A program made the position numbers and the translations under genes. Positions 64 to 38,525 of a stretch of 64,000 nucleotides of DNA are shown here, in pieces. The DNA is from Macrostomum lignano (taxonomy: Eukaryota), in NCBI GenBank assembly GCA_002269645.1, contig NIVC01000517.1:27043-91042 (forward strand), in the 5' to 3' direction. The notes under the pieces were generated by a model. It saw only the letters and a program-made list of their open reading frames with translations, did no database searches and was not told the origin of the DNA. The first letter of the stretch is position 1. Every line of letters begins with the position of its first letter.

Positions 64-3000
64 ACATTGACGAGTGCAGCAGTTCGCCTTGTCACGTCAA
101 CGCCATCTGCAGCAACAATCCGGGCTCATTTTCTTGCGCCTGTCGCCCTGGTTACTATGGCGACGGATACACTTGCATTGGTAAGACAAAAATACGCAAT
201 TAAAAAATCCGAATAACACTGTAAGTTCTGTACCCGAAAAACCGTAAATTTGTCAAATTTTCCGACTTACAGAACTGATGACTCTTTCCACTGACAATGG
301 CACAAAGCTGACGACATACGACTTCAACAACTACACAGTCAGCTACGTTACAATTGAAACTGAAGCTCCGTTCATCATCGGATCACAGAGAGCACCGTAT
401 GCAAGGTATGCAGACTCAAGCCATTAACTTGTTCGACTATTCAAATCGAACCATTTTGCTAGCTAATTTATGCAATCCACACGAAATTAATACAGATTTC
501 TAAAGACGGCTACCTGTCCTTTTCGGATCCACCGTACCAGCTGACCTGGCTACCTGGTACACTACCTGGTGAAGCCGATGGTGTTTCCCTATTGGTCTAC
601 CGGTATTCGTTCGCCTACCCAGACTCCCGTCTACTACGAGTTGCTGGACAGCTCACAGCACAGTAACACGCAGAACTGGAAAAAGGTTGTGGAAATTATT
701 ACCAGCTTCAGCGGAGGCGATACCTACAATCCGCTGAATGCACTCATCGTCACCTGGAATAAGATGCAGCCGTACAGCTACTACGTTTACTACTGTAATC
801 GCTACTGCAACTACTATAAACAGCTGGGTACAGCTGGGCTCAATACTACTGCAAGTACTGCGACCCCAAGCAGGAAGGTAAGACAGGCCCTTCAGTCTTG
901 CATAATATATGCCTCGCCATCGTTTTAATATGGGTAGGCAACAGTGTAGGTTCTACTGCGTAGGTAGAAAAGTAAATGTACCGTATTATGTTGGGTGCCT
1001 TGCAATAGAAATTTTAAATTTTATTAAGCAGAATCAAACTCTGCAAACCCGCAGCACATCAGCTTCCAAGCAATCGTCACCAGAAACGAGAGGCCACTCC
1101 TTCGTCATCTTTAACTACGGACAGTTCGAGATGAGCGGTGGCGGGGTGGCGACTTCTACGTCGCGGCAGGCTTCACTGACGGTTACCAGAAATTCGACAG
1201 GTTGCCCTTTAGCTACTACTGGTGCGCGGAGCAATTATGTCACCGACAATAAGGTCATGGGAAATGTCGGAAAAGTCGAAGACACGTAAGGATAATGGCG
1301 GACTCCATTCCTCCTAGCGACAAGCTCAAGTGCAAAAAATGGATGGACAACGAGCGCAAACGACCTCTTACGACGAAGTTGAGCTGCCGCACTTGCCCTC
1401 GAGACATGCGCCAAGCGGTGTTGGACTGGCGCTACTGGCCATATGAGTACTCTTGCGACAAGAAAAACCAGAACGAGAAAGGAAACTATAAGCTCACCAT
1501 GTGCTTCCGAGGCAGATTTGAGTGCGTGCAGAACTTTACAAATCCGCCAGTATGTCCTTATCCGTGGGAACTGGTACTGCAACCGTTTCATGCGGTGTCA
1601 GTTCTACGCTGCGCCAAGATGTTGCTACAAGCTCAAGGTACACTGGAAGAAGGACGGCCAACTCGTGGATTACTGCGATGCCGGCTACTCGGTGTGGAGC
1701 ATGCGCTGGCGGTTGCGCAACATCATGTTCGACAGACGCCAGAGTGGCTCCTTAATCAAGAGTACTGTGCAAGGAGCGGGACACAGCATGATTCTGGAGA
1801 GAACGAACCAGAACTACTGGTGGTGGATCAAGTACGACGAGCAGCTCAGAAACGAGACGTATGGCTACGATGTTTGCCGAGCGGGCAAGGTGATTGGAAA
1901 GTACAAGAAGTTCCGCCCAAAGTGCAATAGTCGAGAATACACCGAACCGGCTTGGGGTGAGCAAACAGGCTGAACTTGTCATTTTAGCTTAGCAATAGTT
2001 TACTACTAAGTCTTAACTGATTCTTTCAATTTACGAAACAGGTTTCAATCGAGGTGATCCTCACATTAGCACTATTGACGGAATCACGTACTCCTTCAAC
2101 GGCTTGTGCGAGTACTACATGATCAGGAACAGCTCGCAGAGTGCTCCTATGCTCGAGTTGCAAGCCAGAACGGGTCTGGCAAAGTCACTCAATCCGAATG
2201 TCACCGCATCGGCTACCGTTTTCATCGGATTTGCGCTCAAGGCCGGCTCCAACAACTGTTCCATTTCTGTTCTGCTTAACACGAGCTCAAACGACCTGGA
2301 CGTGTACAAAGACAACGAGCTGGGCAGTGTGCTCACGTACTTCTCCGAACAGGAGAACTCCACAACCATCGAAAAGTACACCCTGAAGTCAAACGACAAC
2401 AAGAGCATCAGCATCAGCGAGTCGGACACTGGCTCTCCGTGACCGTCGACAGAGTTCTTAGTCTGCTGCAGGCATCGGTGCAGCTCGACCAGCTGAGACA
2501 CGCCAGCGAAGTGGAAGGACTCATGGGAAACTTCAACGGAAACAAGACTGACGACTTCAAGCTACGAAACGGCACCCTCTTTCCTGGAAACAGCTCGGAG
2601 CGAGACCTGTTCCACTTCGGTCAGAGCTGGGCGCTGCAGTCGAGCGACGTGAGTCACTTCCCATATCCAGCGGGAAAGACTCGAGCGGACTTCTGTAACA
2701 TGTCCTTCGTTCCGGTGTTTGTCGAGGACTACAAGGATAACTTGTTGGACCTGTTCCACAACAACTCGGAGCTCATGACGTCGGCAAACAAGGTAAGTCG
2801 GCACTTTGTAGACAATCACACTATTGGCTGCTCAATATCACATTAAATTCAATACTAAATGCTTTGATGTTTCAGACCTGCTGGAATGCAGAGCAGTCCA
2901 TCTACTTGAGCTGCATGTATGACGCAGCACAGCTGCAGTCACTCGACGCTGCAGAAGAAGCTTCGTTGGCGGTCAGCCAGGAGGTGTCGGCAAAAGCGGT

Positions 3001-4818
3001 GGCCTCAAACTTTGCTCCAGAGTTTAACATGCCAACAAACATCACGTCTACTCGTCGACAACTTTCAACTTGACCATCAACGTCACCGACAAAGACGGAA
3101 ATCCTATCGTGTTGAGCATCCAGGAGCCCAGCAACGACACGTCGATGTGGCTCGACGGCAACGTGCTGGTGTGGCAGGTCGGCATAAACATCAGCGCTTT
3201 CAACTTGACGATCGTGGCCACTGACTCGATGGGAGCACCGACTTCTTGGACGCCAGTCGTCTTGTACATCGACTGCGAGAACGGGGCCACGCACAGCTTC
3301 AACTACACGACTGGGGAAACAGTGGTTGGAGGTACTACTTTCATTTACTATAAATTTACTTCTTTAACTAACTTTGTAGGGTCAAGTATGAAGTTGTGAA
3401 ACCAAATGTATAAAATTCATTTGTACCGCACTGCAGAGAACTTCTACCGAGCACAGTGCAGCTGTCCCAGTGGCTACCAAGGTGACAGGTGCGACGTGAC
3501 GCCCTGCTCGGCACAGCCGAATCCTTGCTACAATGCCAGCATGTGCCACATGTACAGCAACGGTAGTTACTACTGTGACAGCTGCCCCGATGGGATGGTG
3601 GGTGATGGACAGGTGTGCGAAGGTAAGATCCAGGACCTTTTCTTTATCGATGTATATTATCAAAGTATTGTGGGAATTAATTTTCTAACTAATTTTCTTC
3701 TTGATTTTGCCGATGATGCTTAGACTTGACGTTTTTTAAACATAAACTGCAGATACGAACGAATGCCTGGAGACTCCCGGCATCTGTCAGGAGCAGTGCA
3801 CCAACTTGGTCCCAGGCTACCGGTGCAACTGCACCACTCCTGGCTTCCGGGTGTCGCCTAGCAACTCCAGTTTGTGCGAGGACATCGACGAATGCGCCAC
3901 CGGGGACAATCGGTGCAGAGCCGATCAGAACCAGACGTGCGTGAACACGAACGGGTCCTACACGTGCACGTGTCCGATGGCGGGCTTCAAGCTGAACGCT
4001 CTGTACGAATGCGAGGTAAGGATGATTTCCGTAGGTGTGAATTCGGTCACATGATTTTCTGCTATGGTAAGAAGCTGTGCTATATTGTAACGGAAAAGTA
4101 GTTGCTTTCACAATCACAAAATTCTTGTAAAGTTTAGCGTTAGTGAAAAAGTCATGGAAAGCATCGAAACGATTTTGAATTCAGGACATCAACGAGTGTC
4201 GAGTGAACTCTACGAATCCTTGCGGCGGTGACTACATCTGCATTAATAACATCGGCAACTATTCTTGTGACTGTGCGCACAACAAGATCAAAGTCAACGG
4301 CGCCTGCGTCTCGGTGCAGATCAATGTAGATGTTGTCGACAGTGCCACCACGGCGACAGGAGGCGAAACCAACAATCGTGAGTGCACTGCTTCTTTGTAT
4401 AGTCCTTTCTCTGGAATGGACAACTATGTATAGAATTGTATATTTTACAGTCTAATAGTCGGAAGCTGATTTTAACAGGCGAGGTTTGGCTGGAAGTGGG
4501 TTCGGGTTAGCGAGGGTCGGCCGGAGGTGGGTTTAGTCAGGCGAGAGACTAAGACCAAGTAGGCCAAATAGGCCATGTAGTAGGAATAAGAGGGTAGTCC
4601 AACGATTGCTTTATTGTCTTTTACTGACTTTTTTCATTTTTATGCTATATTTCTGTATTTCAGAAAACCAGGCTTTGATCATCTCGCTGTCCGTGGTTGG
4701 CGGTGTGGTCCTCGTTACGGTCGTCGTACTTTCGATCGTGTTTGGCCTCAGAGCGAGGGTTCCCGTTGAAGTGCTGGTGAACCGACGTCCGGAACAAGTT
4801 AACAGATTAAATTATTGA
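64..4818 (+). CDS. MUC4/SUSD2-like type I membrane glycoprotein, paralog 1 (5' end outside window; several frameshifts in this sequence, so pseudogene or assembly error)
   Basis: Spliced exons encode cbEGF (DIDEC, 64-180), NIDO (ISKDGYLSF; SFVIFNY), AMOP-like ([18 protein letters not shown]), VWD starting GDPH (~2050), several EGF repeats and a TM/tail exon (4664-4818). Collinear with the paralog at 15758-23122 but with multiple 1-2 nt indels. Confidence 0.75.
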
Positions 4819-5631
4819 ACTTGTTCGGGAGTGTGCGTTGAATTTGAAAACTTTGACTTTGATTTTGACTAGCAAAAGAGCTAGCTATCTATCATATTAT
4901 CTATCTAATTATAAGTTATACAATGATTGTTTTTATTAATTTATCAATCTATTTTACGCAAACTACGGATGCTGCCAATATTTAAAATACCATGGCAACA
5001 ATCAATTTTTTGGATTAGGAGTAACTGCTATTTGTTTTCAGAAAAAAATGTGCACACTAATAAAAATTGTTACATTGGTTTAAGTTTGCTTTTTAACTTG
5101 GTAGCAATCATTGAAAACTTGATCACAGATTATTTAACCAAATTAACTAATAACTATATGTATGCCTTTTATTTATCAATCTTTTCGAGTATTTATGAAT
5201 TAATGACCGTCCAATGACCTCTTGTTTTTTCCCTTTGTTTTAAGTTCTTTCAGTGTGTGAATTCTAATATTTTCTAACCGTTTTGGCATAAAGTTACCAT
5301 CCTCCTGTATTCACAGCTAAATATAAAAGCACATTGAAATATTTTTGTTGAAAAAAAACCGTTGAGGCTTGTAAATTGCTGTTCTTTTTCAATATGATAT
5401 CTGAACTCACTTTCCATTTGGACGTACAGCAACTGAAATCTACTGTTGAGCGCAGTGCTATATAATATTCACCTCATACTTTTCATAGCCCTTGCTACGA
5501 CAATCGCAAGTAAGTTTTATTAAACTGATTTTTTTTCTAATCAGTCAACTTTGGAATTGGTTAAAACGCAACCAATCCAGATGCAAATTGCTGACCCAGA
5601 GACTCGCCTGGCTGACACAGGACTTCGGGCT

Positions 5632-5740
5632 AACTGACACACCAACTGAAACACCAACTGACACACCAACTGACACACCAACTGAAACACCAACTGACAC
5701 ACCAACTGACACACCAACTGACACACCAACTGACGCACCA
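5632..5740 (+). repeat. 12-bp tandem repeat (AACTGACACACC), about 9 copies; reads TDTP/TETP in one frame
   Basis: Directly visible periodicity. Confidence 0.9.
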
Positions 5741-7047
5741 CGCGCCAATGATACTGACCACATTCAACTCAACTTAACTTACAAAGGGCCTCACCCGACT
5801 GACAGAGCTTCACATTCAACTGACACGTTGGCGCATTTACCTGACTTTCTCATAGTTCCTTCTCATAGTTCATTCCGAATCAACCTGAACCAGTGCCACT
5901 GTTCAGCCGCTGTCATATTTGAAATAAACAAACAAGAGTGGAAGCCGCTGTACAAACAATTTTTGATTGGTAATTAATGTTATAATCCACAGGTTGTCCA
6001 GCTCTATTGAGTCGATTCGTCATTAGCTAAGGTAGCACCTAAGGTTTTCGTAACTAATGAAATGACACTCTTCATTAAAAATAGCTTGTCATTGCATGCT
6101 TGTTTCTCTGTATAGCTTAACCCGAACGGGTGACAGAAAAAAACAATAAAATTCGTAAGTATCGTCTATAGAGGGGTTTGAGCAAAGCATAATGAAGCCG
6201 TTGTTTCTAATGGCAACGCATCGTTAAGAAGCTGTAATTGCTCTTTGGGGTTGGGGGGGGGGGGGTAGCAGCCTCACCCGCACCTTGGCTACCAACTCCG
6301 TGTGTGCTAATTCTATATCACCTTCCGTAAGAAAATGGCGCCATATACCTGTTGAGGAAAGAAAGTTCATAACTGCATAAAAAATAGCGACAGGGGAGTC
6401 CTGAAAACAGTATCTGGACTGGTAAAAGAGTTTTTTACAAGCATCAAACCTCGACAAAATTTTAACTAGCCAGTTTACATTGCCATCAGCTGCCTTAGAT
6501 GGATTAATGGCCTACACATCTACCTTTAGCTGGGGGATATTTTTGGGTGGGGGGGGGGGTGACAGTATCTACATGGTTGCCCTGTTGCAGACGGAGCCAG
6601 TCAATTATCTATCCAGACGTCTATATAAATTTAGACGTCCCTGCACCGTTGAGAGAACACGCGCGAGCGAATACAAGAGAATTTAATTGCCGTCCTCCTG
6701 CCCACTCGGCTGTTTTAAACTACTCAATGTCCGAGCCCTCAGACAAGCTCTCATTGTTTTTTTCCACTCGTTATTTTCCGGTCCTATACCACTTCAATAG
6801 AAGTTCTCGAGACAGTAACGCCCCTCTAGTGCAATTTATAATCTTAACAACCTCGGAGGCTGGGAGGTTGCTTGAAATAATAATGACCCCCCATCCGCAT
6901 CTCACTCCGCAGACACTCACATAGCGGCATTCGCAGCTCGCGTGCTAATGGCTAATAATAGCCCCAGCTTTCTTTCGGTTTAAACTGTCAGTGTGCTTTT
7001 TTAAATGAAAAAAAGGTTAGAACTCCATCGGTTTGAAGTAAACGCGT

Positions 7048-7742
7048 CAGTGGCGGATTTCGAAATATAAAACGAGGGGGCCGATTTTAAACATAAGAGC
7101 GGGGGCGCCATAATATACACGAGAGGGGCGCCATAATATACACGAGAGGGGACGCCATAATATACACGAGGGGACGCCATAATATACACGAGGGGACGCC
7201 ATAATATACACGAGGGGACGCCATAATATACACGAGAGGGGCGCCATAATATACACGAGGGGACGCCATAATATACACGAGAGGGACGCCATAATATACA
7301 CGAGAGGGACGCCATAATATACACGAGAGGGGCGCCATAATATACACGAGAGGGGCGCCATAATATACACGAGAGGGACGACATAATATACACGAGAGGG
7401 GCGCCATAATATACACGAGAGGGGCGCCATAATATACACGAGAGGGACGACATAATATACACGAGAGGGGCGCCATAATATACACGAGAGGGGCGACATA
7501 ATATACACGAGAGGGGCGCCATAATATACACGAGAGGGGCGCCATAATATACACGAGAGGGGCGACATAATATACACGAGAGGGGCGCCATAATATACAC
7601 GAGAGGGGCGACATAATATACACGAGAGGGGCGCCATAATATACACGAGAGGGGCGACATAATATACACGAGAGGGGCGCCATAATATACACGAGAGGGG
7701 CGCCATAATATACACGAGAGGGACGCAATAGACGAGAGGGGC
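7048..7742 (+). mobile_element. Truncated copy of the hAT-like MITE at 11431-11868 (left end only), carrying an expanded 23-bp minisatellite
   Basis: Starts CAGTGGCGGATTT like the element at 11431. The 97-bp left flank (6951-7047) matches 11334-11430. No right TIR found. Confidence 0.7.
7101..7742. repeat. 23-bp minisatellite ATAATATACACGAGAGGGGCGCC, about 27 copies
   Basis: Directly visible; explains the repetitive ORFs 7001-7986. Confidence 0.95.
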
Positions 7743-7798
7743 GCATCTCACTTCGCAGACGCTCATTTAACGACATTCTCAGCTCGCGTTCTAATGTA

Positions 7799-11070: not shown

Positions 11071-11430
11071 TACATTAATACCCATGCTTTAAGGGCGTTA
11101 ATAAGAAAATCAGAGGGCGCCGTTAGCATGGGTATTACTATTATTGAGCCATAGACATTTGTGTCCATGACAAAGTGGGACAGAATAATCGGGCGTAAAA
11201 TGTCATTAACTGCCCGCTAATTGCATTAAAGTAAGTTTAAAGCATTAAAGTCCTGCAAGCGGGCTTAAATGTAGTCTGTGGCATTAAATGGCAAGAATAA
11301 GTGCCCAGCAGGCACAAAGGTCATGGCACAATGGCTAATAATAGCCCCAGCTTTCTTTCGGTTTAAACTGTCAGTGTGTTTTTTTAAATGAAAAAAAGGT
11401 TAGAACTCCATCGGTTTGAAGTATACGCGT

Positions 11431-13984: not shown

Positions 13985-14031
13985 CTTTCATTAACTACTC
14001 GTATATACTAACGATAATATACCAAATAAAA

Positions 14032-21700: not shown

Positions 21701-22301
21701 AGACTCCCGGCATCTGTCAGGAGCAGTGCACCAACTTGGTTCCAGGCTACCGGTGCAACTGCACCACTCCCGGCTTCCGGGTATCGCCTAGCAACTCCAG
21801 TTTGTGCGAGGACATCGACGAATGCGCCACCGGGGACAATCGGTGCAGAGCCGATCAGAACCAGACGTGCGTGAACACGAACGGGTCCTACACGTGCACG
21901 TGTCCGATGGCGGGCTTCAAGCTGAACGCTCTGTACGAATGCGAGGTAAGCTTATACAACAACAACAACAACAAAATACGCGACCCCGAATGCACAGTCA
22001 CAGTTAGAGCAGGGCGCAGATGGCGTGCCGCAGAGCCTGGAAGCGAATAAAGTCCGCTCCGTTGGCAGTGTCGGGCGCCCCAGCATCGCACAGCAGGCAG
22101 TCAACGTATCGGCGCGTTCAGGCTTAAGCTTATAGCATTATTAACAATAGTAGTCTTTGTTTCCTGATACTAGCGTGAGTAATACGAGTAGAAGGAACAA
22201 AAGCAACAACAACTGCAACTGCTGATGCAGTAACAGTGTTTTGCTAAACAGTTGATTTTTGCCAAATGTTTGACCAGTTTTGGATAGCTCGTATAGGCTT
22301 T

Positions 22302-22358
<57 letters not shown>

Positions 22359-22420
22359 ATAGTAGTAGTAGTAGTAGTAGTAGTAGTTGTTGTTGTTGTA
22401 GTTGTTGTTGTTGTTGTTTT

Positions 22421-22453
<33 letters not shown>

Positions 22454-23122
22454 TTTGTTGTTGTTGTTGTTGTTGCCGTAACCAGGTCTGTCTAAAGGTA
22501 TACTTTTTCATACATATACCTAATTCTTTCTCAGGACATAAACGAGTGCAGGAACCCAACGAACCCTTGCGGTGGCGACTACATCTGCGTGAATGACATC
22601 GGCAGCTATTCGTGCGAATGCGCGCAGAACATGATCAGAGTGAACGGCAAGTGCGTAAAGGTGGTTATACGCTCGACCGACAGCGCTACCACGGCGCCGA
22701 TTGACGACTCTTGTGAGTGTATTGTCTGTAGAATTACTCAAGTTATAAATATGAACATAGCCATTAGAAAGGCAAGACATATTAAAAGATGAGCATTGGG
22801 TCTGACTGAAAGCAGTAACAATTTTTGTGCTGAAAAGAGGAAAACCTATAGCTGTCTCCTAAAATTTTCCAAGAAACGTATAATTTGCAGTCCTTCTACC
22901 CACTTTAGTAGTCCTTATGGTTTTCAATTGTTTACTGTGTCTATGCCTCACAATTTCGCACCAACCATTTGCGCTTCAGCCAACACTGTGCTGATCATCT
23001 CGCTAGTGATCGGCGGCGTGCTGCTCATGACTGTGATAGTCAGCGTGGCTATCATTTTCGGCGTAAGGACGCGGGTTCCAGTAGAAGGACTTTTTGATCT
23101 GCCGTCGCCAGAAAACGATTAG
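15758..23122 (+). CDS. MUC4/SUSD2-like type I membrane glycoprotein, paralog 2 (signal peptide, 6 x 20-aa repeats, 3 EGF, NIDO, AMOP, VWD, EGF repeats, TM, short tail)
   Basis: Exons: 15758-15821 ([21 protein letters not shown]), 16861-17517, 17669-17779, 17897-18013, 18128-18261, 18368-18754, 18963-19892, 19978-20732, 20816-21272, 21379-21564, 21683-21945, 22535-22712, 22980-23122. Splice phases are consistent except the 18754/18963 junction. Confidence 0.85.
16947..17306 (+). repeat. Coding 60-bp repeat, 6 copies: [16 protein letters not shown](A/E)PAP
   Basis: Exact 360-bp block in the frame of exon 16861-17517, which continues into an EGF domain. Confidence 0.9.
22302..22455. repeat. Compound microsatellite (GTA)n followed by (GTT)n, intronic
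   Basis: Directly visible; lies within intron 21946-22534. Confidence 0.95.
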
Positions 23123-23962
23123 AGAAGTGACGATTGACAGTGAAGATGTTCTCTGACAATAATTAACTTTGAGCAATGTTTTTTTTACGCTCAATGTTTT
23201 TTACGCCTTGTAGATTGTAGCCAATCATTATAGAATATTGATCGGAGAACTGCTGAAGGTTACGTTTCTATGAAAATTAAAAATACTGTTTTCTTTATAG
23301 TGAATCTGTCGTAAAAACAAAAATCTGCGCATAGCTACTTAAAATAATACTTCATCTTGAGAAATCGGTTGTAAAATTTAGAAGTCGAAGTAGACGACTG
23401 CACAACTGTACAAACAGTTTGCTTCCATTTTGTTTCAATATTTATTTACGGTTCATATCCACTTTGCTATTTAATGATCAGTCTGAGCTTATACAGAAAA
23501 ATATTTATCTGTCTTTTTTAATCCAAATTATTCGAGCATATACCATGGCTAATCTTAATCTATACCCGAGTGCATCAAAGACTACTTCTATTATTATTTT
23601 TTATAGTATTTTTTACTGCCGCGTAAAATAGTATTAATCCTAGATGCATTCTATTAAGTGATATTTGATCAATAAATTCGCTAAAAAAGCAGAACTTTCA
23701 CGGAAAAAAGCATTCAACTTTGGTTATTTTTTCATTTAAAATCGGAATCGATGAATGCAATTCTCGAAATTTAATTTGTTTTATAATTGTTAATAACATT
23801 TTTGTGAATCACCCGTTCCAACCAAGACACGTGACGAAAAAATCGATAGCTAAAAGTGCATACCCATTTGGGCAACGGATGTACAAATAAACTGTTTCGT
23901 AAATACAAACTAAATGTACACTGAAGTACAATTCAACAGTTGCATAGCCTTGACTTTGACTG

Positions 23963-26900
23963 CTAGCTGCCGCCGCCACAGCAGCCGGCCTTCTTGTCGG
24001 CGATGGCCGCAGCGTCCGTGTGGCCCAGCTTGATGCTGTCGCGTCGACCAGCCGACGGATGATGTCTTGCATCGTCTGGCTCTCTGGTGAGCAGGTTCTG
24101 TGAATGGTTTTATTAAGCGTGTACCGTGTACTTTGGCGGGCAAGTTTTATTTTGTAGTGGATTCATGACAATATTTATACTTTTAGTAGGTAGGTTGGTT
24201 TAAAAATTTAATGTCGCGTCGTTTTAGAGTTCAATTGGCGAAGAAACGGAGAAAATCGGTTGAGCCTTTTGGGAGATAACCTGTTACATACCCACAGACA
24301 GACAGGGCCGGTGGAGGGGGGGTTGCTACTTTAGATATATTAGACTGAGTAGCACGAACACGATGATTTGGTAGAATAAACGATGTCTCAGTTTCGATAT
24401 TTTATTCATAAACGATGCTAACAAAAACGATGCACAAGATATAATGGCGGTGCGTACGGGCGCTAAATGGGGTGGTGGGCACACAAGATGTACAGTCAGT
24501 AATTCAATAGTCATTTAGTTGCTTAAGTATAGTTGAATTAGTCACAAGTGCAGACTCCAGCGCTGCCTCATTCAATGCTAATTTGAAGTATTTTACGACA
24601 AAGTCGTCATGAACTCTATGCTTAATTTAAGCTCGGATTTTTAGCGAAAATATTGATTTCAATACGAACTTCATTTTAATTTAGGCCTACTAAGTATAAT
24701 ACCAATATACAAGTACAGATTTTGCTTTTGTAATACGATATTTAACAACTTAATTTTATAGGGTAGCTACTACGAGCGTATCATAGTACTATGAAAGGCA
24801 TAGTAAGAGGTACTATGAATTAAATTCCCGGCATTTATTTTTTATTAGAGGCAGGGGGGTTGTGTGCACCCTGGCGCGATTTAAGCGTCATTGGCACACA
24901 ACCGGCGAGAGGCATTACTGCCCATTCCGCCGACTCCCCTGAGCAGGCATACAAGCGCGCGGATACGTACGCAGGCACACACTCACACAGGAGTGTACAG
25001 CGGCCCTAACTTTATATTACCGTTAGGCATGTACACTTCACTGCGCCTTGGGGGGTTGGCTCTCAAGGCCGTTAATTGCACGAGCAGAGCCAAGCCGAGA
25101 TTCCAATTCAGCCCCAAATTAATGGGACTGCACTTGGAATCGAGCCTGGGTTGCTGGCACACCAGAGCAGCTGCGCTACCGCTGGGCTACAGCCCCCTTT
25201 AATTCCCGGCATGGCCCAGCCATTAGTCTAGGCGGTCAGTTAAGTTTATATTTAATTGGTCGGGCCATTAAATAGTTTTTTAATGGCGTTGTATAGCAAG
25301 TGAGATAGACTGGAGCTGATTGGCTGCCAGGGACAGAGGGAACACAATAATGTACAGTGTACAGTGTACAGTACAGTAACCGGTTAAGAACGTACATGTA
25401 AGTCACGTGACTAAACAGTCTACTCGTGTTAAGGAAGCTTTGGCTAAAAAGTCCTGTGACTGCAGATTGGTGTATTCCTATTGGCTGTCCACTTCTAATC
25501 GGGGTTTTCTGAATTCGTGCAATTAAATTTGCAATAATCACGTGACTGAAACAGTTGGCGTTTATAAGTTGTCATAAATGTTCTGACCTTCCACATCGAA
25601 ACCATAACACTGGCGACTTCAGTGAAGAGATCTTGCACATTCTCTCCTGTCTTGGAGCTGGTCTCAAAGAATCCATAGGATCCGTAACGCTCCTTGGCCT
25701 GTAAGAGAAAATTTCAATAGCTAGAGAAATTTTGCTGAATTTAATCTAGAAAGAAACACTTGTTGAAAAATGCTACAGTATAATTACATCTACTCCGTCT
25801 TCGCGCGGAACCTGACGTTGAGACTCCAAGTCTAGCTTGTTGCCGACCATGAATACTGGGATTACGTCACTGTCTGCTTTCTGCAATATTAATTTATGTT
25901 AATGGCGTTTCAAAGTGAGTAATGCGTGAGATGCTGACAAGCTGTAGGGGTGGCATGTTTGTGTTGTAAGATGCGTCGTAAATTGAAAAATTCTTGACTT
26001 TCACGACGATTTGACTGCCAGTGAATCCTATTGCCAACCAGTCAATAAGTTGCATGACTGCCACAAATTGCGACTGCAAGCACTAAAGATGAACTTTTGT
26101 AGAGTGCTTTACCTCCCGCAAAAGTCAGTCATAAAAACTGTTAACATTTATTCAGTTTAATAAAATAAAATAAGTTTTATTCAGTAGTATAGTAAGTAGC
26201 ACGTATAATAATAAGTACTAAATCACAGATATATTTTAATCAACCAATCACAAGAAAGAAAAGTCGAACATGTTATTTTTAGCAACCGACCAATCGCGTG
26301 TGACCTACAATTGTCAAGTGTAAATCCCATCTGCGATTCATCATTCGGCATGCACCCGGATGAACCAATCAAAGATAACCAAAAATAACCCAGCTACGGT
26401 AATCAATCACGCGCGCTTACACTAGACTAGTGGCTTAACTTTCTACCCTGTCATGCTTGACAGCAACCAAAGCGTGACCCTTTGACATTTACGAAAAAGG
26501 TGATGAACGACCTCGCGAGGGGTCCGTTTGCCTATAAATACAAGTGGTCCGAAGCGGACCCGGAGCAGCATCCGAACCTCCGGGAGAAGCTCCGAAGAGG
26601 AAGCCTTGTACGCACTTCCTACAGAGACTCGGCTGAGTTCTTGCGGTAAGCCTTACTCATTTGCGCCCGTTGTTTGAAGCGACTCATTATTGTTGTTGTA
26701 GTTGAGTCTATTGAGACTCTTGAGTCTATTGCGACTCCATTGATCGTAGTCTCCAGAAGGACTTAGAGATCTTAGAGGACTATCAGTGATTACCGGAGCT
26801 GTACCTAGAGTGCATTGAGGCACTGCTAGAAGGAGAAGGCTTAGCTGAAACCACATTAAATTCGAAGCTTCCGACTGGCATGGTCCGAAACGCAGATACC

Positions 26901-28637
26901 GGCCGGCCATACTCCAAGGAGCGAATTCGATCAACGAATTCACCAGAGGACATCCGGATACGAGAAAGACGCAAAGGAGAGCTCTTCAATTCAGGACTCA
27001 AAGTAATAAATACCTTCATTTGATTACTGGGTTGCCTAGCAATAGCTACGCTCGTAGAAGTGATTGTTCCTTGATTACTAAGAAAGTCTTGGTACGCTCG
27101 TAGTAAGGAACACATTACTTTAACCCTAACCCTAAACCACAGCCCTAAACCATAACCTTGAAACAAAAACATACATATAGACCCTACCCTTACAGATAAT
27201 CAAGCTATAATCCTTATTACCTCGCTGATGCTTTTGAGCCAGTAGGTTTTCATTCTGTCAAACGATTTCCGATTAGTAATATCGTAAAGCAGCACTATGC
27301 CCTGGAAGTTGTTGCAAAATTAGGTTAGAAAATTATAAATGTCATTAAAATAGATTGTCTGATGCATGCTTGGGTGCAACCTTGGGATTCACTCGGCCGT
27401 TTCTATTGGCAACACACACATGTGTGTCGCTATTGGACAGAATAGTAGTCACGTGACTGCTCTCAGCCAATAGCGACTTACATGTGTGTTGCCAATAGAA
27501 ACGGCCGGGTGATTCCCAAGGTAGCGCATGTATGGCGATGCGACTAGTGCAGTGAGAAATTAAATAAAAAAGTGCACTGCACACAATTATATTTACCCGT
27601 GCATTCCTGTAGTGAAACGACGTTATTGTCCGGAATTTCTCTTGACCGGCCGTGTCCCTGCAATAATTAAGCCACTAAATATTTCATCTGCTTACAAATC
27701 AATAAAGAACAGCCGGTCTCCCGAAAAAAATATTTTTTAACTAATGTTTGTTGACACGTGACCGCGCCCAGCCTTTCCCTGATTGGTCAATTTAGCTTTA
27801 TCAGCAGGCTAAATGCTGACTCACCAGATTTCCAACTCGATAACCTTATCGCCGATCGTAAACTTTTTTCTTTTAAAATCTATGCCTGTAAAAATAATTA
27901 GATGAACAATTATTGTTTTTAGCTGAGAAGTTAACACGTTAATTACTTATGAAAACATGTTAGGCTTAACTTTAATATGGTATGACGCATATTTATGGAC
28001 TACTAGTACAGTAGTAAGCTTAAGCATTTGACGTGTTTGTTTATAAAGCAAAGGCATAAACATGGTGACGTTTTCTTAGGTTTCGACTTCAAACACCTAC
28101 GAGTTGATGATCATCTAGAGCTATAAAGCTCTATTAATAAGATTAAAGTGAATATTGATGCTTGTGAAGCTTGCAGATTGTGAAGATTGAGGGTTGTGAA
28201 GCCAAGGGATAGTGAATATTAAAATTTGTGAAGCCAGGAGGTTGTGAAGCTTGGGGGTTTATGAAGCTTGAGGTTTATGAAGCTTGGGGTTTATGAAGCT
28301 TGCATGAGGTTTATGAAGTATGGGATTTATGAAGCATGAGGTTTATGAAGCTTGGGGTTTATGAAGTTTAGGGTTTATGAAGCTTGGAGTTTATGGAGCT
28401 TGGGGTTTATAAGCCTTGTTGACCGAGTAAATCTGGCGGGGGGGGGCTGCTGCTTAACTCGCGCACTGAGAGCTTCAAAGCCAATAACACCTGAGAACAC
28501 TAACCTATGGTGCTCATGACATGCGAGCTGAACTCCTCTCCAATCAAGGTTCTCAGCAGGCAAGTTTTCCCAACGGAGCTCTCGCCAAGAAGGACGATTT
28601 TAAATCGGCCGTGAGGGGCCTGCACCGCCTTGGCCAT
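23963..28637 (-). CDS. Rab-family small GTPase, 224 aa, most similar in motif pattern to the Rab1/8/10/13 group
   Basis: Seven GT-AG exons in phase: 28637-28505 (KIVLLGESSVGKT..STIG), 27885-27825 (IDFK..LEIW), 27657-27597 (DTAGQEKFRTIT), 27301-27221 (GIVLLYDIT), 25880-25788 (GNKLDL), 25698-25588 (FFETSSKTGENV), 24097-23963 (..KKAGCCGGGS*). Total 675 nt. Confidence 0.95.
24835..25200 (-). mobile_element. tRNA-derived SINE in Rab intron 6
   Basis: Minus-strand head 25197-25124 has A box TAGCCCAGCGG and B box GGCTCGATTCC. A-rich tail near 24835-24846. 12-bp TSD AATTCCCGGCAT at 24823-24834 and 25201-25212. Confidence 0.85.
26244..26540 (+). promoter_or_regulatory. CCAAT/TATA promoter-like module inside Rab intron 4, antisense to Rab
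   Basis: CCAAT near 26244, 26290 and 26365; TATAAATA at 26533-26540. Confidence 0.45.
27380..27521. repeat. Near-perfect ~140-bp palindrome (hairpin/MITE-like) in Rab intron 3
   Basis: CCTTGGGATTCACTCGGCCGTTTCTATTGGCAACACAC pairs with GTGTGTTGCCAATAGAAACGGCCGGGTGATTCCCAAGG; centre AGTCACGTGACT. Confidence 0.85.
28170..28415. repeat. Degenerate ~15-17 bp repeat (GGGTTTATGAAGCTT) in Rab intron 1
   Basis: Directly visible. Confidence 0.8.
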
Positions 28638-29426: not shown

Positions 29427-32400
29427 GTGTACTAACCTCAGCCAATGCTGCTTAACTGCAGACACTTAATTAACGCGCTTGAGACACTGAATCACATTCA
29501 AATTCCGTGTACTAACCTCAGCCAATGCTGCTTAACTGCAGACACTTAATTAACGCGCTTGAGACACTGAATCACATTCAAATTCCGTGTACTAACCTCA
29601 GCCAATGCTGCTTAACTGCAGACACTTAATTAACGCGCTTGAGACACTGAATCACATTCAAATTCCGTGTACTAACCTCAGCCAATGCTGCTTAACTGCA
29701 GACACTTAATTAACGCGCTTGAGACACTGAATCACATTCAAATTCCGTGTACTAACCTCAGCCAATGCTGCTTAACTGCAGACACTTAATTAACGCGCTT
29801 GAGACACTGAATCACATTCAAATTCCGTGTACTAACCTCAGCCAATGCTGCTTAACTGCAGACACTTAATTAACGCGCTTGAGACACTGAATCACATTCA
29901 AATTCCGTGTACTAACCTCAGCCAATGCTGCTTAACTGCAGACACTTAATTAACGCGCTTGAGACACTGAATCACATTCAAATTCCGTGTACTAACCTCA
30001 GCCAATGCTGCTTAACTGCAGACACTTAATTAACGCGCTTGAGACACTGAATCACATTCAAATTCCGTGTACTAACCTCAGCCAATGCTGCTTAACTGCA
30101 GACACTTAATTAACGCGCTTGAGACACTGAATCACATTCAAATTCCGTGTACTAACCTCAGCCAATGCTGCTTAACTGCAGACACTTAATTAACGCGCTT
30201 GAGACACTGAATCACATTCAAATTCCGTGTACTAACCTCAGCCAATGCTGCTTAACTGCAGACACTTAATTAACGCGCTTGAGACACTGAATCACATTCA
30301 AATTCCGTGTACTAACCTCAGCCAATGCTGCTTAACTGCAGACACTTAATTAACGCGCTTGAGACACTGAATCACATTCAAATTCCGTGTACTAACCTCA
30401 GCCAATGCTGCTTAACTGCAGACACTTAATTAACGCGCTTGAGACACTGAATCACATTCAAATTCCGTGTACTAACCTCAGCCAATGCTGCTTAACTGCA
30501 GACACTTAATTAACGCGCTTGAGACACTGAATCACATTCAAATTCCGTGTACTAACCTCAGCCAATGCTGCTTAACTGCAGACACTTAATTAACGCGCTT
30601 GAGACACTGAATCACATTCAAATTCCGTGTACTAACCTCAGCCAATGCTGCTTAACTGCAGACACTTAATTAACGCGCTTGAGACACTGAATCACATTCA
30701 AATTCCGTGTACTAACCTCAGCCGATGCTGCTTAACTGCAGACACTTAATTAACGCGCTTGAGACACTGAATCACATTCAAATTCCGTGTACTAACCTCA
30801 GCCAATGCTGCTTAACTGCAGACACTTAATTAACGCGCTTGAGACACTGAATCACATTCAAATTCCGTGTACTAACCTCAGCCAATGCTGCTTAACTGCA
30901 GACACTTAATTAACGCCTTGAGACACTGAATCACATTCAAATTCCGTGTACTAACCTCAGCCAATGCTGCTTAACTGCAGACACTTAATTAACGCGCTTG
31001 AGACACTGAATCACATTCAAATTCCGTGTACTAACCTCAGCCAATGCTGCTTAACTGCAGACACTTAATTAACGCGCTTGAGACACTGAATCACATTCAA
31101 ATTCCGTGTACTAACCTCAGCCGATGCTGCTTAACTGCAGACACTTAATTAACGCGCTTGAGACACTGAATCACATTCAAATTCCGTGTACTAACCTCAG
31201 CCAATGCTGCTTAACTGCAGACACTTAATTAACGCGCTTGAGACACTGAATCACATTCAAATTCCGTGTACTAACCTCAGCCAATGCTGCTTAACTGCAG
31301 ACACTTAATTAACGCGCTTGAGACACTGAATCACATTCAAATTCCGTGTACTAACCTCAGCCAATGCTGCTTAACTGCAGACACTTAATTAACGCGCTTG
31401 AGACACTGAATCACATTCAAATTCCGTGTACTAACCTCAGCCAATGCTGCTTAACTGCAGACACTTAATTAACGCGCTTGAGACACTGAATCACATTCAA
31501 ATTCCGTGTACTAACCTCAGCCAATGCTGCTTAACTGCAGACACTTAATTAACGCGCTTGAGACACTGAATCACATTCAAATTCCGTGTACTAACCTCAG
31601 CCAATGCTGCTTAACTGCAGACACTTAATTAACGCGCTTGAGACACTGAATCACATTCAAATTCCGTGTACTAACCTCAGCCAATGCTGCTTAACTGCAG
31701 ACACTTAATTAACGCGCTTGAGACACTGAATCACATTCAAATTCCGTGTACTAACCTCAGCCGATGCTGCTTAACTGCAGACACTTAATTAACGCGCTTG
31801 AGACACTGAATCACATTCAAATTCCGTGTACTAACCTCAGCCAATGCTGCTTAACTGCAGACACTTAATTAACGCGCTTGAGACACTGAATCACATTCAA
31901 ATTCCGTGTACTAACCTCAGCCAATGCTGCTTAACTGCAGACACTTAATTAACGCGCTTGAGACACTGAATCACATTCAAATTCCGTGTACTAACCTCAG
32001 CCAATGCTGCTTAACTGCAGACACTTAATTAACGCGCTTGAGACACTGAATCACATTCAAATTCCGTGTACTAACCTCAGCCAATGCTGCTTAACTGCAG
32101 ACACTTAATTAACGCGCTTGAGACACTGAATCACATTCAAATTCCGTGTACTAACCTCAGCCGATGCTGCTTAACTGCAGACACTTAATTAACGCGCTTG
32201 AGACACTGAATCACATTCAAATTCCGTGTACTAACCTCAGCCAATGCTGCTTAACTGCAGACACTTAATTAACGCGCTTGAGACACTGAATCACATTCAA
32301 ATTCCGTGTACTAACCTCAGCCAATGCTGCTTAACTGCAGACACTTAATTAACGCGCTTGAGACACTGAATCACATTCAAATTCCGTGTACTAACCTCAG

Positions 32401-33025
32401 CCAATGCTGCTTAACTGCAGACACTTAATTAACGCGCTTGAGACACTGAATCACATTCAAATTCCGTGTACTAACCTCAGCCAATGCTGCTTAACTGCAG
32501 ACACTTAATTAACGCGCTTGAGACACTGAATCACATTCAAATTCCGTGTACTAACCTCAGCCAATGCTGCTTAACTGCAGACACTTAATTAACGCGCTTG
32601 AGACACTGAATCACATTCAAATTCCGTGTACTAACCTCAGCCAATGCTGCTTAACTGCAGACACTTAATTAACGCGCTTGAGACACTGAATCACATTCAA
32701 ATTCCGTGTACTAACCTCAGCCGATGCTGCTTAACTGCAGACACTTAATTAACGCGCTTGAGACACTGAATCACATTCAAATTCCGTGTACTAACCTCAG
32801 CCAATGCTGCTTAACTGCAGACACTTAATTAACGCGCTTGAGACACTGAATCACATTCAAATTCCGTGTACTAACCTCAGCCAATGCTGCTTAACTGCAG
32901 ACACTTAATTAACGCGCTTGAGACACTGAATCACATTCAAATTCCGTGTACTAACCTCAGCCAATGCTGCTTAACTGCAGACACTTAATTAACGCGCTTG
33001 AGACACTGAATCACATTCAAATTCC
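29427..33025. repeat. Highly homogeneous 80-bp satellite, 45 copies
   Basis: Unit GTGTACTAACCTCAGCCAATGCTGCTTAACTGCAGACACTTAATTAACGCGCTTGAGACACTGAATCACATTCAAATTCC. 3599 bp = 45 x 80 minus one 1-bp deletion near 30916. A>G variant in five units. Confidence 0.97.
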
Positions 33026-33337
33026 AATCTTCCAATTGTTCCAAATTTTATAAGTTTTCTGCTTGCAATGGTTTCCGCTCCAATTGTTTTTAAGCCCCCC
33101 TCCATTGTAAACAGAGCCAGACAGGCAGACTTGAGTAAATGCGTGCCGTTGACTCACACAGGTAGCAAAGGTCGCAGTAAACTGCATAGCCATACAGTGA
33201 AAACAAAATAAGAACCATTGTAGTAGTGTGTAATAGGGTGCAGTAAATAAAAAAATGATGCTGAAAAACTGATGGGGCTGCTCACATAACGATTTTGGGG
33301 AACAACGTCAATAAAAAATATTTCCGCCGCCACGAAC

Positions 33338-33345
33338 TATAAATA
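33338..33345 (+). promoter_or_regulatory. TATA box of the transmembrane mucin gene
   Basis: TATAAATA about 95 nt upstream of the ATG at 33440. Confidence 0.55.
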
Positions 33346-33439
33346 TGGCCCAAGGCGAAAGCTATACCGCAAGACCCATTCATTCTCTCGCTGATCAGTT
33401 TCAATTCGGCGAATGAAATCAAGATAATAAAAGAGCGAT

Positions 33440-36400
33440 ATGAATCCACAGACTTGCTGCCTCTTGGTTGCTGGACTCGCCCTGTCACTGCTGGCTTCAG
33501 GTGAGTTTGAGTGTCTCATTGCAACTTTTCAATTAGCAACGATTCCTTCAGTGCCGTTGTACACCCTGAGGGTGTGTGACTGCGTGCCTGTGTACAGAGA
33601 AATGGGAAGAATTGTCGAGAGCGACATCGGTCACAGGGTAACAGTACAATCCAGATCTTTACCTGATGTTACCACTAAACCAATCATCACGAATGTACAC
33701 TGAAATTCAGGTATAACAGCGACAGCGGCTCCTGAAGAGACGACTGAAGGACCAGTCAAGTCGACAGCGGCTCCCGAAGAGACAACTGAAGGACCAGTCA
33801 AGACTGAAGGACCAGTCAAGTCGACAGCGGCTCCTGAAGAGACAACTGAAGGACCAGTCAAGTCGACAGCGGCTCCCGAAGAGACAACTGAAGGACCAGT
33901 CAAGACTGAAGGACCAGTCAAGTCGACAGCGGCTCCTGAAGAGACAACTGAAGGACCAGTCAAGTCGACAGCGGCTCCTGAAGAGACAACTGAAGGACCA
34001 GTCAAGACTGAAGGACCAGTAAAGACAACTGAAGGACCAGTCAAGTCGACAGCGGCTCCTGAAGAGACAACTGAAGGACCAGTCAAGTCGACAGAGGCTC
34101 CTGAAGAGACAACTGAAGGACCAGTCAAGACTGAAGGACCAGTCAAGTCGACAGCGGCTCCTGAAGAGACGACTGAAGGACCAGTCAAGACTGAAGGACC
34201 AGTCAAGTCGACAGAGGCTCCTGAAGAGACGACTGAAGGACCAGTCAAGTCGACAGCGGCTCCTGAAGAGACAACTGAAGGACCAGTAAAGACTGAAGGA
34301 CCAGTCAAGTCGACAGCGGCTCCTGAAGAGACGACTGAAGGACCAGTCAAGACTGAAGGACCAGTCAAGTCGACAGAGGCTCCTGAAGAGACGACTGAAG
34401 GACCAGTCAAGTCGACAGCGGCTCCTGAAGAGACAACTGAAGGACCAGTCAAGACTGAAGGACCAGTCAAGTCGACAGCGGCTCCTGAAGAGACGACTGA
34501 AGGACCAGTCAAGACTGAAGGACCAGTAAAGACAACTGAAGGACCAGTCAAGTCGACAGCGGCTCCTGAAGAGACAACTGAAGGACCAGTCAAGACTGAA
34601 GGACCAGTCAAGTCGACAGCGGCTCCTGAAGAGACGACTGAAGGACCAGTCAAGTCGACAGAGGCTCCTGAAGAGACAACTGAAGGACCAGTCATGACTG
34701 AAGGACCAGTGAAGACAACTGAAGGACCAGTCAAGACTGAAAGACCAGTCAAGTCGACAGCGGCTCCTGAAGAGACGACTGAAGGACCAGTCAAGTCGAC
34801 AGCGGCTCCTGAAGAGACAACTGAAGGACCAGTCAAGTCGACAGCGGCTCCCGAAGAGACAACTGAAGGACCAGTTAATACTGAAGGACCAGTCAAGTCG
34901 ACAGCGGCTCCTGAAGAGACGACTGAAGGACCAGTCAAGACTGAAGGACCAGTAAAGACAACTGAAGGACCAGTCAAGTCGACAGCGGCTCCTGAAGAGA
35001 CAACTGAAGGACCAGTCAAGACTGAAGGACCAGTCAAGTCGACAGCGGCTCCTGAAGAGACGACTGAAGGACCAGTCAAGTCGACAGAGGCTCCTGAAGA
35101 GACAACTGAAGGACCAGTCATGACTGAAGGACCAGTGAAGACAACTGAAGGACCAGTCAAGACTGAAAGACCAGTCAAGTCGACAGCGGCTCCTGAAGAG
35201 ACGACTGAAGGACCAGTCAAGTCGACAGCGGCTCCTGAAGAGACACCTGAAGGACCAGTCAAGTCGACAGCGGCTCCCGAAGAGACAACTGAAGGACCAG
35301 TCAAGACTGAAGGACCAGTCAAGTCGACAGCGGCTCCTGAAGGGACGACTGAAGAGCCAGTGAAGACAACAGCCACTGCTGAAGAGGCGACTAAAGGACC
35401 AGTCAAGTCGACAGCGGCTCCTGAAGAGACACCTGAAGGACCAGTCAAGTCGACAGCGGCTCCCGAAGAGACAACTGAAGGACCAGTCAAGACTGAAGGA
35501 CCAGTAAAGACAACTGAAGGACCAGTCAAGTCGACAGCGGCTCCTGAAGAGACAACTGAAGGACCAGTCAAGACTGAAAGACCAGTCAAGTCAACAGCGG
35601 CTCCTGAAGAGACAACTGAAGGACCAGTCAAGACTGAAAGACCAGTCATGTCGACAGCGGCTCCTGTAGAGACGACTGAAGGACTAGTCATGTCGACAGC
35701 GGCTCCTGAAGAGACAACTGAAGGACCAGTCAAGACTGAAGGACCAGTCAAGTCGACAGCGGCTCCTGAAGAGACGACTGAAGGACCAGTAAAGTCGACA
35801 GCGGCTCCTGAAGGGACGTCTGAAGGACCAGTGAGGACTGAAGGACCAGTCAAGTCGACAGAGGCTCCTGAAGAGACAACTGAAGGACCAGTCAAGACTG
35901 AAGGACCAGTAAAGACAACTGAAGGACCAGTCAAGTCGACAGCGGCTCCTGAAGGGACGACTGAAGGACCAGTCAAGACTGAAGGACCAGTCAAGTCGAC
36001 AGCGGCTCCTGAAGGGACGACTGAAGGACCAGTCAAGTCGACAGCGGCTCCTGAAGAGACGACTGAAGGACCAGTCAAGTCGACAGAGGCTCCTGAAGGG
36101 ACGACTGAAGGACCAGTCAAGTCGACAGCGGCTCCTGAAGAGACGACTGAAGGACCAGTCAAGTCGACAGAGGCTCCTGAAGGGACGACTGAAGGACCAG
36201 TGAGGACTGAAAGACCAGTCAAGTCGACAGAGGCTCCTGAAGAGACAACTGAAGGACCAGTCAAGACTGAAGGACCAGTAAAGACAACTGAAGGACCAGT
36301 CAAGTCGACAGCGGCTCCTGAAGGGACGACTGAAGGACCAGTCAAGACTGAAGGACCAGTCAAGTCGACAGCGGCTCCTGAAGGGACGACTGACGGACCA

Positions 36401-38525
36401 GTCAAGTCGACAGCGGCTCCTGAAGAGACGACTGAAGGACCAGTCAAGTCGACAGAGGCTCCTGAAGGGACGACTGAAGGACCAGTCAGGACTGAAGGAC
36501 CAGTAAAGACAACTGAAGGACCAGTCAAGTCGACAGCGGCTCCTGAAGGGACGACTGAAGGACCAGTCAGGACTGAAGGACCAGTCAAGTCGACAGAGGC
36601 TCCTGAAGGGACGACTGAAGGACCAGTCAAGTCGACAGCGGCTCCTGAAGAGACGACTGAAGGACCAGTCAAGACTGAAGGACCAGTCAAGTCGACAGCG
36701 GCTCCTGAAGAGACGACTGAAGGACCAGTCAAGTCGACAGAGGCTCCTGAAGAGACAACTGAAGGACCAGTCATGACTGAAGGACCAGTGAAGACAACTG
36801 AAGGACCAGTCAAGACTGAAAGACCAGTCAAGTCGACAGCGGCTCCTGAAGAGACGACTGAAGGACCAGTCAAGTCGACAGCGGCTCCTGAAGAGACACC
36901 TGAAGGACCAGTCAAGTCGACAGCGGCTCCCGAAGAGACAACTGAAGGACCAGTTAAGACTGAAGGACCAGTCAAGTCGACAGCGGCTCCTGAAGGGACG
37001 ACTGAAGAGCCAGTGAAGACAACAGCCACTGCTGAAGAGGCGACTGAAGGACCAGTCAAGTCGACAGCGGCTCCTGAAGAGACACCTGAAGGACCAGTCA
37101 AGTCGACAGCGGCTCCCGAAGAGACAACTGAAGGACCAGTCAAGACTGAAAGACCAGTCATGTCGACAGCGGCTCCTGTAGAGACGACTGAAGGACCAGT
37201 CAAGTCGACAGCGGCTCCTGAAGAGACAACTGAAGGACCAGTCAAGACTGAAGGACCAGTCAAGTCGACAGCGGCTCCTGAAGAGACGACTGAAGGACCA
37301 GTCAAGTCGACAGCGGCTCCTGAAGGGACGACTGAAGGACCAGTGAGGACTGAAGGACCAGTCAAGTCGACAGAGGCTCCTGAAGAGACGACTGAAGGAC
37401 CAGTCAAGACTGAAGGACCAGTAAAGACAACTGAAGGACCAGTCAAGTCGACAGCGGCTCCTGAAGGGACGACTGAAGGACCAGTCAAGACTGAAGGACC
37501 AGTCAAGTCGACAGCGGCTCCTGAAGGGACGACTGAAGGACCAGTCAAGTCGACAGAGGCTCCTGAAGGGACGACTGAAGGACCAGTCAAGTCGACAGCG
37601 GCTCCTGAAGAGACGACTGAAGGACCAGTCAAGTCGACAGAGGCTCCTGAAGGGACGACTGAAGGACCAGTCAGGACTGAAGGACCAGTAAAGACAACTG
37701 AAGGACCAGTCAAGTCGACAGCGGCTCCTGAAGGGACGACTGAAGGACCAGTCAGGACTGAAGGACCAGTCAAGTCGACAGAGGCTCCTGAAGGGACGAC
37801 TGAAGGACCAGTCAAGTCGACAGCGGCTCCTGAAGAGACGACTGAAGGACCAGTCAAGTCGACAGAGGCTCCTGAAGAGACAACTGAAGGACCAGTCAAG
37901 ACTGAAGGACCAGTAAAGACAACTGAAAGACCAGTCAAGTCGACAGCGGCTCCTGAAGAGAGAACTGAAGGTCCATTGAAGTCAACAGCGACTGCTGAAG
38001 AGACGACTGAAGAGAAAACTGAAGGACCAGTCAAGTCGACAGCGGCTCCTGAAGGACCAGCCAAGACTGAAGGACCAGTAAAGACAACTGAAGGACCAGT
38101 CAAGTCGACAGAGGCTCCTGAAGAGACAACTGAAGGACCAGTCAAGACTGAAGGACCAGTGAAGACAACTGAAGGACAAGTGAAGACAACTGAAGAACCA
38201 GTCAAGACAACTGAAGGAACAGTCAAGTCGACAGCGGCTCCTGAAGAGACAACCGAAGCGCCAGTTGCGAAGACAACAGAGGCTATTACAGTGACCCAGA
38301 CGACTGAAGCTCGTAAGTTTCCTTTTGTCATGATTGAGTTTTGATTGGTACGTAGAATCAAGTTTAAATCGTTGAAATCAGCCTCATTTTAATTAATTTT
38401 TTCCAGCAAACAACCGTCTGCTTATTATTGTGAGCCTCAGTCTGGGCGCTGTGGTTGTCATTCTAATCCTAATAATTCTGCTAATCGTCATGTGTCGCTC
38501 GAGACCTCCGGTTGGCGCTGTATGA
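33440..38525 (+). CDS. Transmembrane mucin-like protein, ~1593 aa (signal peptide, ~1530 aa T/E/P/S-rich repeats, TM, short tail)
   Basis: Exon 1 33440-33500 (MNPQTCCLLVAGLALSLLAS), exon 2 33711-38312 (4602 nt, STAAPEETTEGPVK repeats), exon 3 38407-38525 (LLIIVSLSLGAVVVILILIILLIVMCRSRPPVGAV*). GT-AG, phase 1-1. Confidence 0.92.
33717..38270 (+). repeat. Coding modular tandem repeat built from TEGPVK (18 bp), TTEGPVK (21 bp) and STAAPEET (24 bp)
   Basis: Directly visible in DNA and translation. Confidence 0.95.

Follow-up and report, generated by a model that had tools for sequence, protein, structure and literature searches.

Three kinds of described protein are the closest counterparts of the genes in a 64,000-nucleotide stretch of the flatworm Macrostomum lignano (assembly GCA_002269645.1, contig NIVC01000517.1, positions 27,043 to 91,042; the whole of this stretch is referred to as the window): (i) vertebrate MUC4, (ii) the membrane-tethered mucins rich in proline, threonine, and serine (PTS), and (iii) the Rab GTPases Rab8, Rab10, Rab13, and Sec4. 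MUC4 is built of a signal peptide, N-terminal PT-rich tandem repeats of variable number, a NIDO domain, a Cys-rich region at the AMOP position, a VWD domain that carries GDPH and misses the usual GLCG Cys, EGF domains that follow the VWD, and a single transmembrane helix with a short tail. Autocatalytic cleavage at GDPH into two subunits is established for MUC4, MUC2, and MUC5AC. Membrane-tethered PTS mucins combine a signal peptide and a long T/P-rich tandem-repeat ectodomain with one transmembrane helix and a very short tail. Rab8, Rab10, Rab13, and Sec4 share the G1–G5 and RabF motifs and a C-terminal CC pair. The features listed for each kind recur in the window: those of MUC4 in a gene designated gene B (with GLMGNFNG in place of the GLCG Cys motif), those of the tethered mucins in a gene designated the PTS gene, and those of the GTPases in a Rab gene, which also gives its top Protein Data Bank (PDB) scores against this group.

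A second MUC4-like gene, gene A, completes the set. The locus is probably a young, lineage-specific array of MUC4-like genes together with a probable PTS-only gene, with the Rab as an incidental neighbour. The array would comprise gene B, the 97% identical gene A, and, immediately beyond the window edge, an inverted copy. It would also take in the probable PTS-only membrane mucin-like gene, which may be of the same family origin, and the divergent flatworm-type Rab would lie between gene B and the PTS gene merely as a neighbour. The preliminary description had placed four genes here, and its coordinates and strands hold for the gene models built, two of which match annotated products. Positions are given in window coordinates (record position minus 27042, in the orientation of the NIVC01000517.1 record); 13963–38637 of the window is identical to that contig. 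A second M. lignano contig, NIVC01000340.1, encodes an identical Rab protein and a gene B product of 1492 aa, with DNA approximately 98–99% identical; it is either a haplotype or a product of the recent genome doubling.

The MUC4-like genes

Gene B (PAA81659.1, BOX15_Mlig018549g2) occupies 15758–23122 of the plus strand and encodes 1451 aa in 13 exons (15758–15821, 16861–17517, 17669–17779, 17897–18013, 18128–18261, 18368–18754, 18989–19892, 19978–20732, 20816–21272, 21379–21564, 21683–21945, 22535–22712, and 22980–23122), in a model identical to the annotated product. Intron 2 (17517/17669) is of the GC-AG type, with the donor AG/GCACGT, and the model with the GC donor reproduces the annotated protein exactly. 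The order of its parts is signal peptide, PT-rich repeats, EGF, NIDO, a divergent AMOP-like region, VWD with GDPH, EGFs, and transmembrane segment; the signal peptide, the hydrophobic transmembrane helix, and the 18-aa tail were assigned by inspection. Pfam recognizes three N-terminal EGFs, NIDO at residues 362–568 (38.4 bits, cut-off 25), VWD at residues 796–971 (55.2 bits, over the cut-off), and EGF_CA and cEGF at 1301–1349, C-terminal to the VWD. The PDB matches of the VWD are the corresponding domains of FCGBP, MUC5B, VWF, and MUC2.

The repeats lie in exon 2 (16946–17310, plus strand), where Tandem Repeats Finder (TRF) reports six 60-bp copies that encode 20-aa units ending in (A/E)PAPT, and P+T+S amounts to 40.5% of the N-terminal region. 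The copy on NIVC01000340.1 (PAA85246.1) has eight such 20-aa PT-rich units, a mucin-style difference in repeat number. The gene B product is expected to enter the secretory pathway, to be O-glycosylated on the PT-rich repeats, and to reside at the cell surface. The GDPH codons (19989–20000, plus strand) stand at the start of the VWD, the site of the autocatalytic cleavage motif in MUC4-type proteins, and no variation is seen at G796, D797, P798, or H799 across the 42 aligned family members. Given the cleavage known from the vertebrate proteins, this invariance suggests that gene B, by analogy with MUC4, may likewise be cleaved autocatalytically into two associated subunits.

The region between NIDO and VWD is the divergent part of the protein. 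Pfam AMOP gives no match to these 228 residues of gene B even at E ≤ 10, and none in gene A. A word-index homology search with a rough NIDO–VWD concatenation returned only 2 matches, and a full HMMER search with gene B was used instead; it drew 1504 relatives from 1.84 billion representatives, and 41 of them were scanned for domains. Most carry the Mucin-4-like C8-3 domain (C8-3_MUC4; 37/41 at E ≤ 0.001); VWD is found in 36, NIDO in 28, and Pfam AMOP in 4 of the 41. In six tested relatives, Pfam AMOP falls inside the NIDO–VWD interval, with scores from 185 down to 13 bits. Against a profile of this interval built on 33 relatives, gene B reaches 27.8 bits, as compared to at most 1.9 bits for 200 shuffles, and the region keeps the C..W, CP, CCY, and RP elements, with four conserved Cys columns substituted or shifted. 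The AMOP region of gene B is best described as a divergent homologue below Pfam-level membership. After the VWD, C8-3_MUC4 reaches 15.7 bits (E 0.009), under its cut-off of 25.

Unlike MUC4, gene B has a tiny repeat region (6 × 20 aa), three EGFs before NIDO, an AMOP region with approximately 80 extra residues that is too divergent for Pfam, and this low C8-3_MUC4 score. It contains neither Sushi nor somatomedin B domains and is therefore not like SUSD2 or insect Mesh, two further members of the NIDO-AMOP-VWD group. One-to-one orthology with MUC4 is unlikely, and the domain layout makes “MUC4-like” a fair description of the architecture. Of the NIDO-AMOP-VWD composition proposed in the preliminary description, NIDO and VWD stand for gene B, alongside GDPH, the EGFs, and the transmembrane segment; the AMOP domain, on which Pfam is silent, is reduced to a divergent relative. 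A literature search for mucins or NIDO/AMOP in flatworms returned nothing relevant. A transcript contig from SRR30276804 in Logan (4733 bp, no introns) encodes a 1134-aa protein approximately 70% identical to gene B; it presumably comes from another Macrostomum-like species in which the family is expressed.

Gene A was located by tblastn and blastn with gene B at approximately 60–4818 of the plus strand and is 97.3% identical to it over 3 kb. Its visible exons begin with the third EGF and continue through the transmembrane segment to the stop; a run of 1987 Ns directly before window position 1 has taken the place of the 5′ end. The annotation holds two pieces, PAA81657 (620–826, plus strand, 69 aa) and PAA81658.1 (Mlig032912g4; 3145–4818, plus strand, 327 aa), the second of which was rebuilt exactly. 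In this assembly, the exons are interrupted by approximately 20 frame-breaking indels of 1–2 bp. Such a broken frame, the fragmentary annotation, and the missing 5′ exons are what a decaying pseudogene, rather than a second working MUC4-like gene, would leave, but this explanation is unlikely on several counts. The ratio of non-synonymous to synonymous divergence (dN/dS) between gene A and gene B is 0.14 at a synonymous divergence (dS) of 0.07 (46 synonymous and 27 non-synonymous changes), and roughly one indel per three to four substitutions is far too many for real decay at such a low dN/dS. In addition, the UniProt models P0126 and P0129, which derive from another assembly, match the distinctive C-terminal exons of gene A; P0126 reads through the frameshift at 3046, and its tail difference fits a single-base difference in a C run.

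An inverted third MUC4-like copy lies beyond the 1987-N gap (record approximately 17345–27042, or window −9697 to 0, for the region including the gap), and PAA81655.1 (308 aa) is the annotation of a part of it. The 4.9-kb alignment of this copy with gene A contains 57 mismatches and 62 gap openings at 97.2% identity, and its set of indels differs from that of gene A, which also speaks against decay; its dN/dS relative to gene B is 0.12. This copy is either a true palindromic duplication or an assembly artefact. The well-assembled copy of gene B on the second contig, on the other hand, has only one indel relative to gene B, which is in frame, at a dN/dS of 0.087. The indel-to-substitution ratio of window 1–5000 and the inverted arm is far above that of the latter pair, at a dN/dS of approximately 0.1, which suggests that the Mlig_3_7 consensus is of low quality here. 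Because the dN/dS of gene A is low despite its many indels and the region adjoins the gap, the frame breaks are read as consensus errors rather than decay, and they are most likely just that. Gene A is probably a working paralogue, and both gene A and gene B are under purifying selection.

Directly downstream of gene A, an open frame with TPTDTPTETPTD repeats extends over 5489–5974 and includes a 36-bp tandem repeat (5632–5740). It is probably a non-coding minisatellite rather than a further mucin exon.

The PTS gene

The PTS gene spans 33440–38525 of the plus strand in a coherent model of three exons and 1593 aa. Exon 1 (33440–33500) encodes the signal-peptide-like sequence MNPQTCCLLVAGLALSLLAS plus one base and ends at a GT donor in phase 1; an exact copy of it is present in NIVC01000340.1. 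Exon 2 (33711–38312) holds approximately 1530 aa of TEGPVK / STAAPEETTEGPVK repeats over 4.6 kb, and exon 3 (38407–38525) encodes the transmembrane segment LLIIVSLSLGAVVVILILIILLIVM, the tail CRSRPPVGAV, and the stop. All junctions are GT-AG and in phase 1. A candidate TATA box (TATAAATA, 33338–33345, plus strand) lies upstream, its end 95 bp from the ATG, and the stop is followed after 258 bp by an AATAAA (38783–38788, plus strand).

MUC1-type mucins, CD43, podocalyxin, and endomucin are functional analogues of such a protein. Its composition sets it apart from membrane-tethered PTS mucins: the repeat domain is unusually rich in glutamate (T 21%, E 20%, P 14%, and S only 5%), with a net charge of −159 and P+T+S of only 40.8% (39 to 42 in each 100-aa window). 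The threshold used in mucin prediction is approximately 40% P+T+S, against which the PTS gene is borderline. Pfam finds no SEA or other folded domain in the protein. If made, the product is predicted to be a long, strongly acidic, glycosylated brush on one transmembrane helix. What the preliminary description called a pure PTS membrane mucin thus keeps its modelled signal peptide, repeats, and transmembrane segment and becomes a T/E/P-rich protein with 5% serine, for which neither an annotation nor a homologue was found.

The array could instead be one of the many minisatellites of a satellite-rich genome, with signal-peptide-like and transmembrane-like frames on either side by chance. Several observations would suit this explanation: the gene is not in the public transcript-based annotation, the C-terminal 200 residues resemble no protein among 5.8 billion protein clusters, dozens of minisatellites were found across the window by TRF, and further frames as well as the opposite strand are open too. 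The repeat variants show no excess at third codon positions (9, 10, and 12 distinct variants at the first, second, and third positions), a count that is uninformative in itself. Nevertheless, every DNA unit of the PTS repeats has a length divisible by 3 (18 bp for TEGPVK; 42, 60, and 102 bp as TRF periods), unlike most other arrays in the window (23, 25, 28, 37, 41, and 80 bp), and the 42-bp unit keeps a single frame in 78 of 78 copies. No frame-breaking indel occurs across 4.6 kb here or across 3.8 kb in the second copy, where many rearrangements and a different organization of the array have left at least 1295 codons open. The exons with their GT-AG junctions in phase 1, the stop, the TATA-like box, and the AATAAA are coherent, and the last exon is similar to its counterpart in the adjacent gene family. 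As for the missing annotation, short-read transcript assemblies typically fail on such arrays. A chance minisatellite is, on balance, an unlikely source of this frame, and the PTS gene is probably real.

An origin of the PTS gene in the MUC4-like family was considered because its signal-peptide exon and last exon have the same splice phase as those of gene B and because its last exon is similar to that of the NIDO family (score 51–66, as compared to a shuffle mean of 27–31, in a kind of test that transmembrane segments inflate). At the DNA level, comparison of the PTS flanks with the flanks of genes A and B yielded only chance 9–14-mers. From its exon phases and last exon, the PTS gene may be a derived, truncated member of the MUC4-like family.

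The Rab gene and its linkage

The Rab gene (PAA81660.1, BOX15_Mlig005781g1) lies on the minus strand at 23963–28637 and encodes 224 aa in seven exons with canonical splice sites (28637–28505, 27885–27825, 27657–27597, 27301–27221, 25880–25788, 25698–25588, and 24097–23963), with a 100% match to the annotated protein. It scores 177 bits against Pfam Ras and has 410 PDB matches at E ≤ 1e-20; all 60 among the matches listed are Rab, Ypt, or Sec4 proteins. The G motifs GESSVGKT, WDTAGQE, GNKLD, and ETSSK are present in the sequence, and the RabF motifs IGIDF, IWDTAGQE, KFRTIT, FHYRNA, and LLYDIT were identified by eye. Unlike in Rab8, Rab10, Rab13, and Sec4, the CC pair is four residues from the end (KKAGCCGGGS, 23963–23990), a position that is unusual among Rab prenylation motifs. 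The protein is presumably prenylated at this CC motif and would act in some step of membrane traffic that sequence does not assign.

The preliminary description had placed this Rab in the Rab8/10/13 group, an assignment that does not survive comparison with solved structures. The scores are flat (Rab8A 148, Rab10 145, Sec4 145, Rab1a 142, Rab26 141, and Rab6B 133 bits) and span Rab8, 10, 1, 26, 6, 2, 43, and 3, so that the label “secretory-type” is weak. Rab-10 is the automatic UniProt name of the protein. The best single-domain relative is instead an unclassified Rab of the tapeworm Mesocestoides corti (175 bits, 48% identity), which is equally unassignable (Rab3B 138 and Rab10 137 bits at best). 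The relatives retrieved are mainly unnamed metagenomic Rabs and chimeric predictions, and identity to the best-scoring named or metagenomic ones among the matches listed is at most 50%. The M. lignano protein is a true Rab and, judged by pairwise scores, the orthologue of no classical Rab. Orthology to Rab1, which the preliminary description had named as the case that would refute its proposal, does not apply. Between the two contigs, the coding sequence differs by 1 synonymous change in 675 bp, as compared to 39 differences in 3804 bp for the whole aligned gene region; with a single exonic difference, the Rab is under purifying constraint.

The arrangement had been taken as a possible co-expressed epidermal or gland-cell unit of the MUC4-like genes, the PTS gene, and a Rab dedicated to the export of coat proteins, and in its favour the Rab (i) scores marginally highest against exocytic Rabs, (ii) is divergent, lineage-restricted, and constrained, and (iii) sits between membrane mucin-like genes in an order that is kept on NIVC01000340.1. 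Such a unit is nonetheless very improbable. The margin over Rab1a and Rab26 is trivial, and the second contig, as a copy only 98–99% identical, is no independent evidence for linkage. The Rab and PTS genes are head-to-head, as had been described, but 4.8 kb separates their start codons, and 3.6 kb of this gap is taken up by an 80-bp satellite (29427–33025; 45 copies, 99% matches by TRF), so that there is no compact shared promoter. Offset blastn matches suggest that the length of this satellite array differs on NIVC01000340.1. Gene B and the Rab are convergent, with stop codons 841 bp apart. Of the unit's members, the PTS gene is without transcript support, and animals rarely have functional clusters made up of unrelated genes.

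Conserved linkage is absent in both places examined. The M. corti Rab is flanked by QRICH1/DUF3504 and UQCC2 genes, and within 10 kb of it tblastn detects neither NIDO nor VWD nor PTS sequence. Similarly, P0131, an M. lignano paralogue 42% identical to gene B, has a KIF21A-like gene and one of unknown function as its neighbours, and no Rab is found within 10 kb of P0131. The identifiers Mlig005781, Mlig018549, Mlig013855, and Mlig032912 do not occur in the literature full text or supplements searched, and a whole-body single-nucleus RNA+ATAC atlas of M. lignano exists (PMC11398382). Functional coupling of the mucin-like genes and the Rab is, as far as the DNA goes, unsupported beyond adjacency, and the limited linkage tests oppose it. 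A narrower proposal, in which a divergent flatworm-specific Rab was recruited as a dedicated mucin-export GTPase and kept in a small co-expressed cluster, is less likely still.

Five points weigh against the Rab being an incidental neighbour of a young MUC4-like array. The Rab/mucin-like arrangement appears on NIVC01000340.1 as well, in a copy that seems too recent to inform. The linkage tests are limited to one distant species, whose Rab may be non-orthologous, and one diverged paralogue. The incidental-neighbour explanation draws on sequence and linkage and leaves room for co-expression. If the PTS gene does derive from the MUC4-like family, the Rab would be inside the array rather than beside it. 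Lastly, a Rab that is divergent and without a close homologue outside M. lignano in the search run would fit a specialised role.

Surrounding sequence and meaning of the locus

The remaining genes of the window, identified with Pfam on the minus strand at 40279–63677, are NMD3, a UQ_con E2 enzyme with a hydrophobic C-terminal tail, an MFS transporter, and NUP160; TRF arrays with periods of 15–46 bp sit between the coding pieces of their open reading frames. With these unrelated housekeeping genes as neighbours, a secretory theme is absent from the region. Scans of the window for tRNAs and Rfam families gave no matches.

A co-expressed module, if true, would be a rare animal case of cargo and trafficking genes kept together, and nothing found points there. 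The value of the locus is a modest one of annotation. It presents M. lignano as an animal with a recently expanding family of MUC4-like surface proteins and proposes a large acidic mucin-like gene that is missing from the public annotation. It also illustrates how a badly polished, gap-flanked inverted repeat in Mlig_3_7 makes an apparently working gene, gene A, look broken. Finally, the M. lignano Rab and its tapeworm relative may mark an unclassified group of flatworm Rabs.

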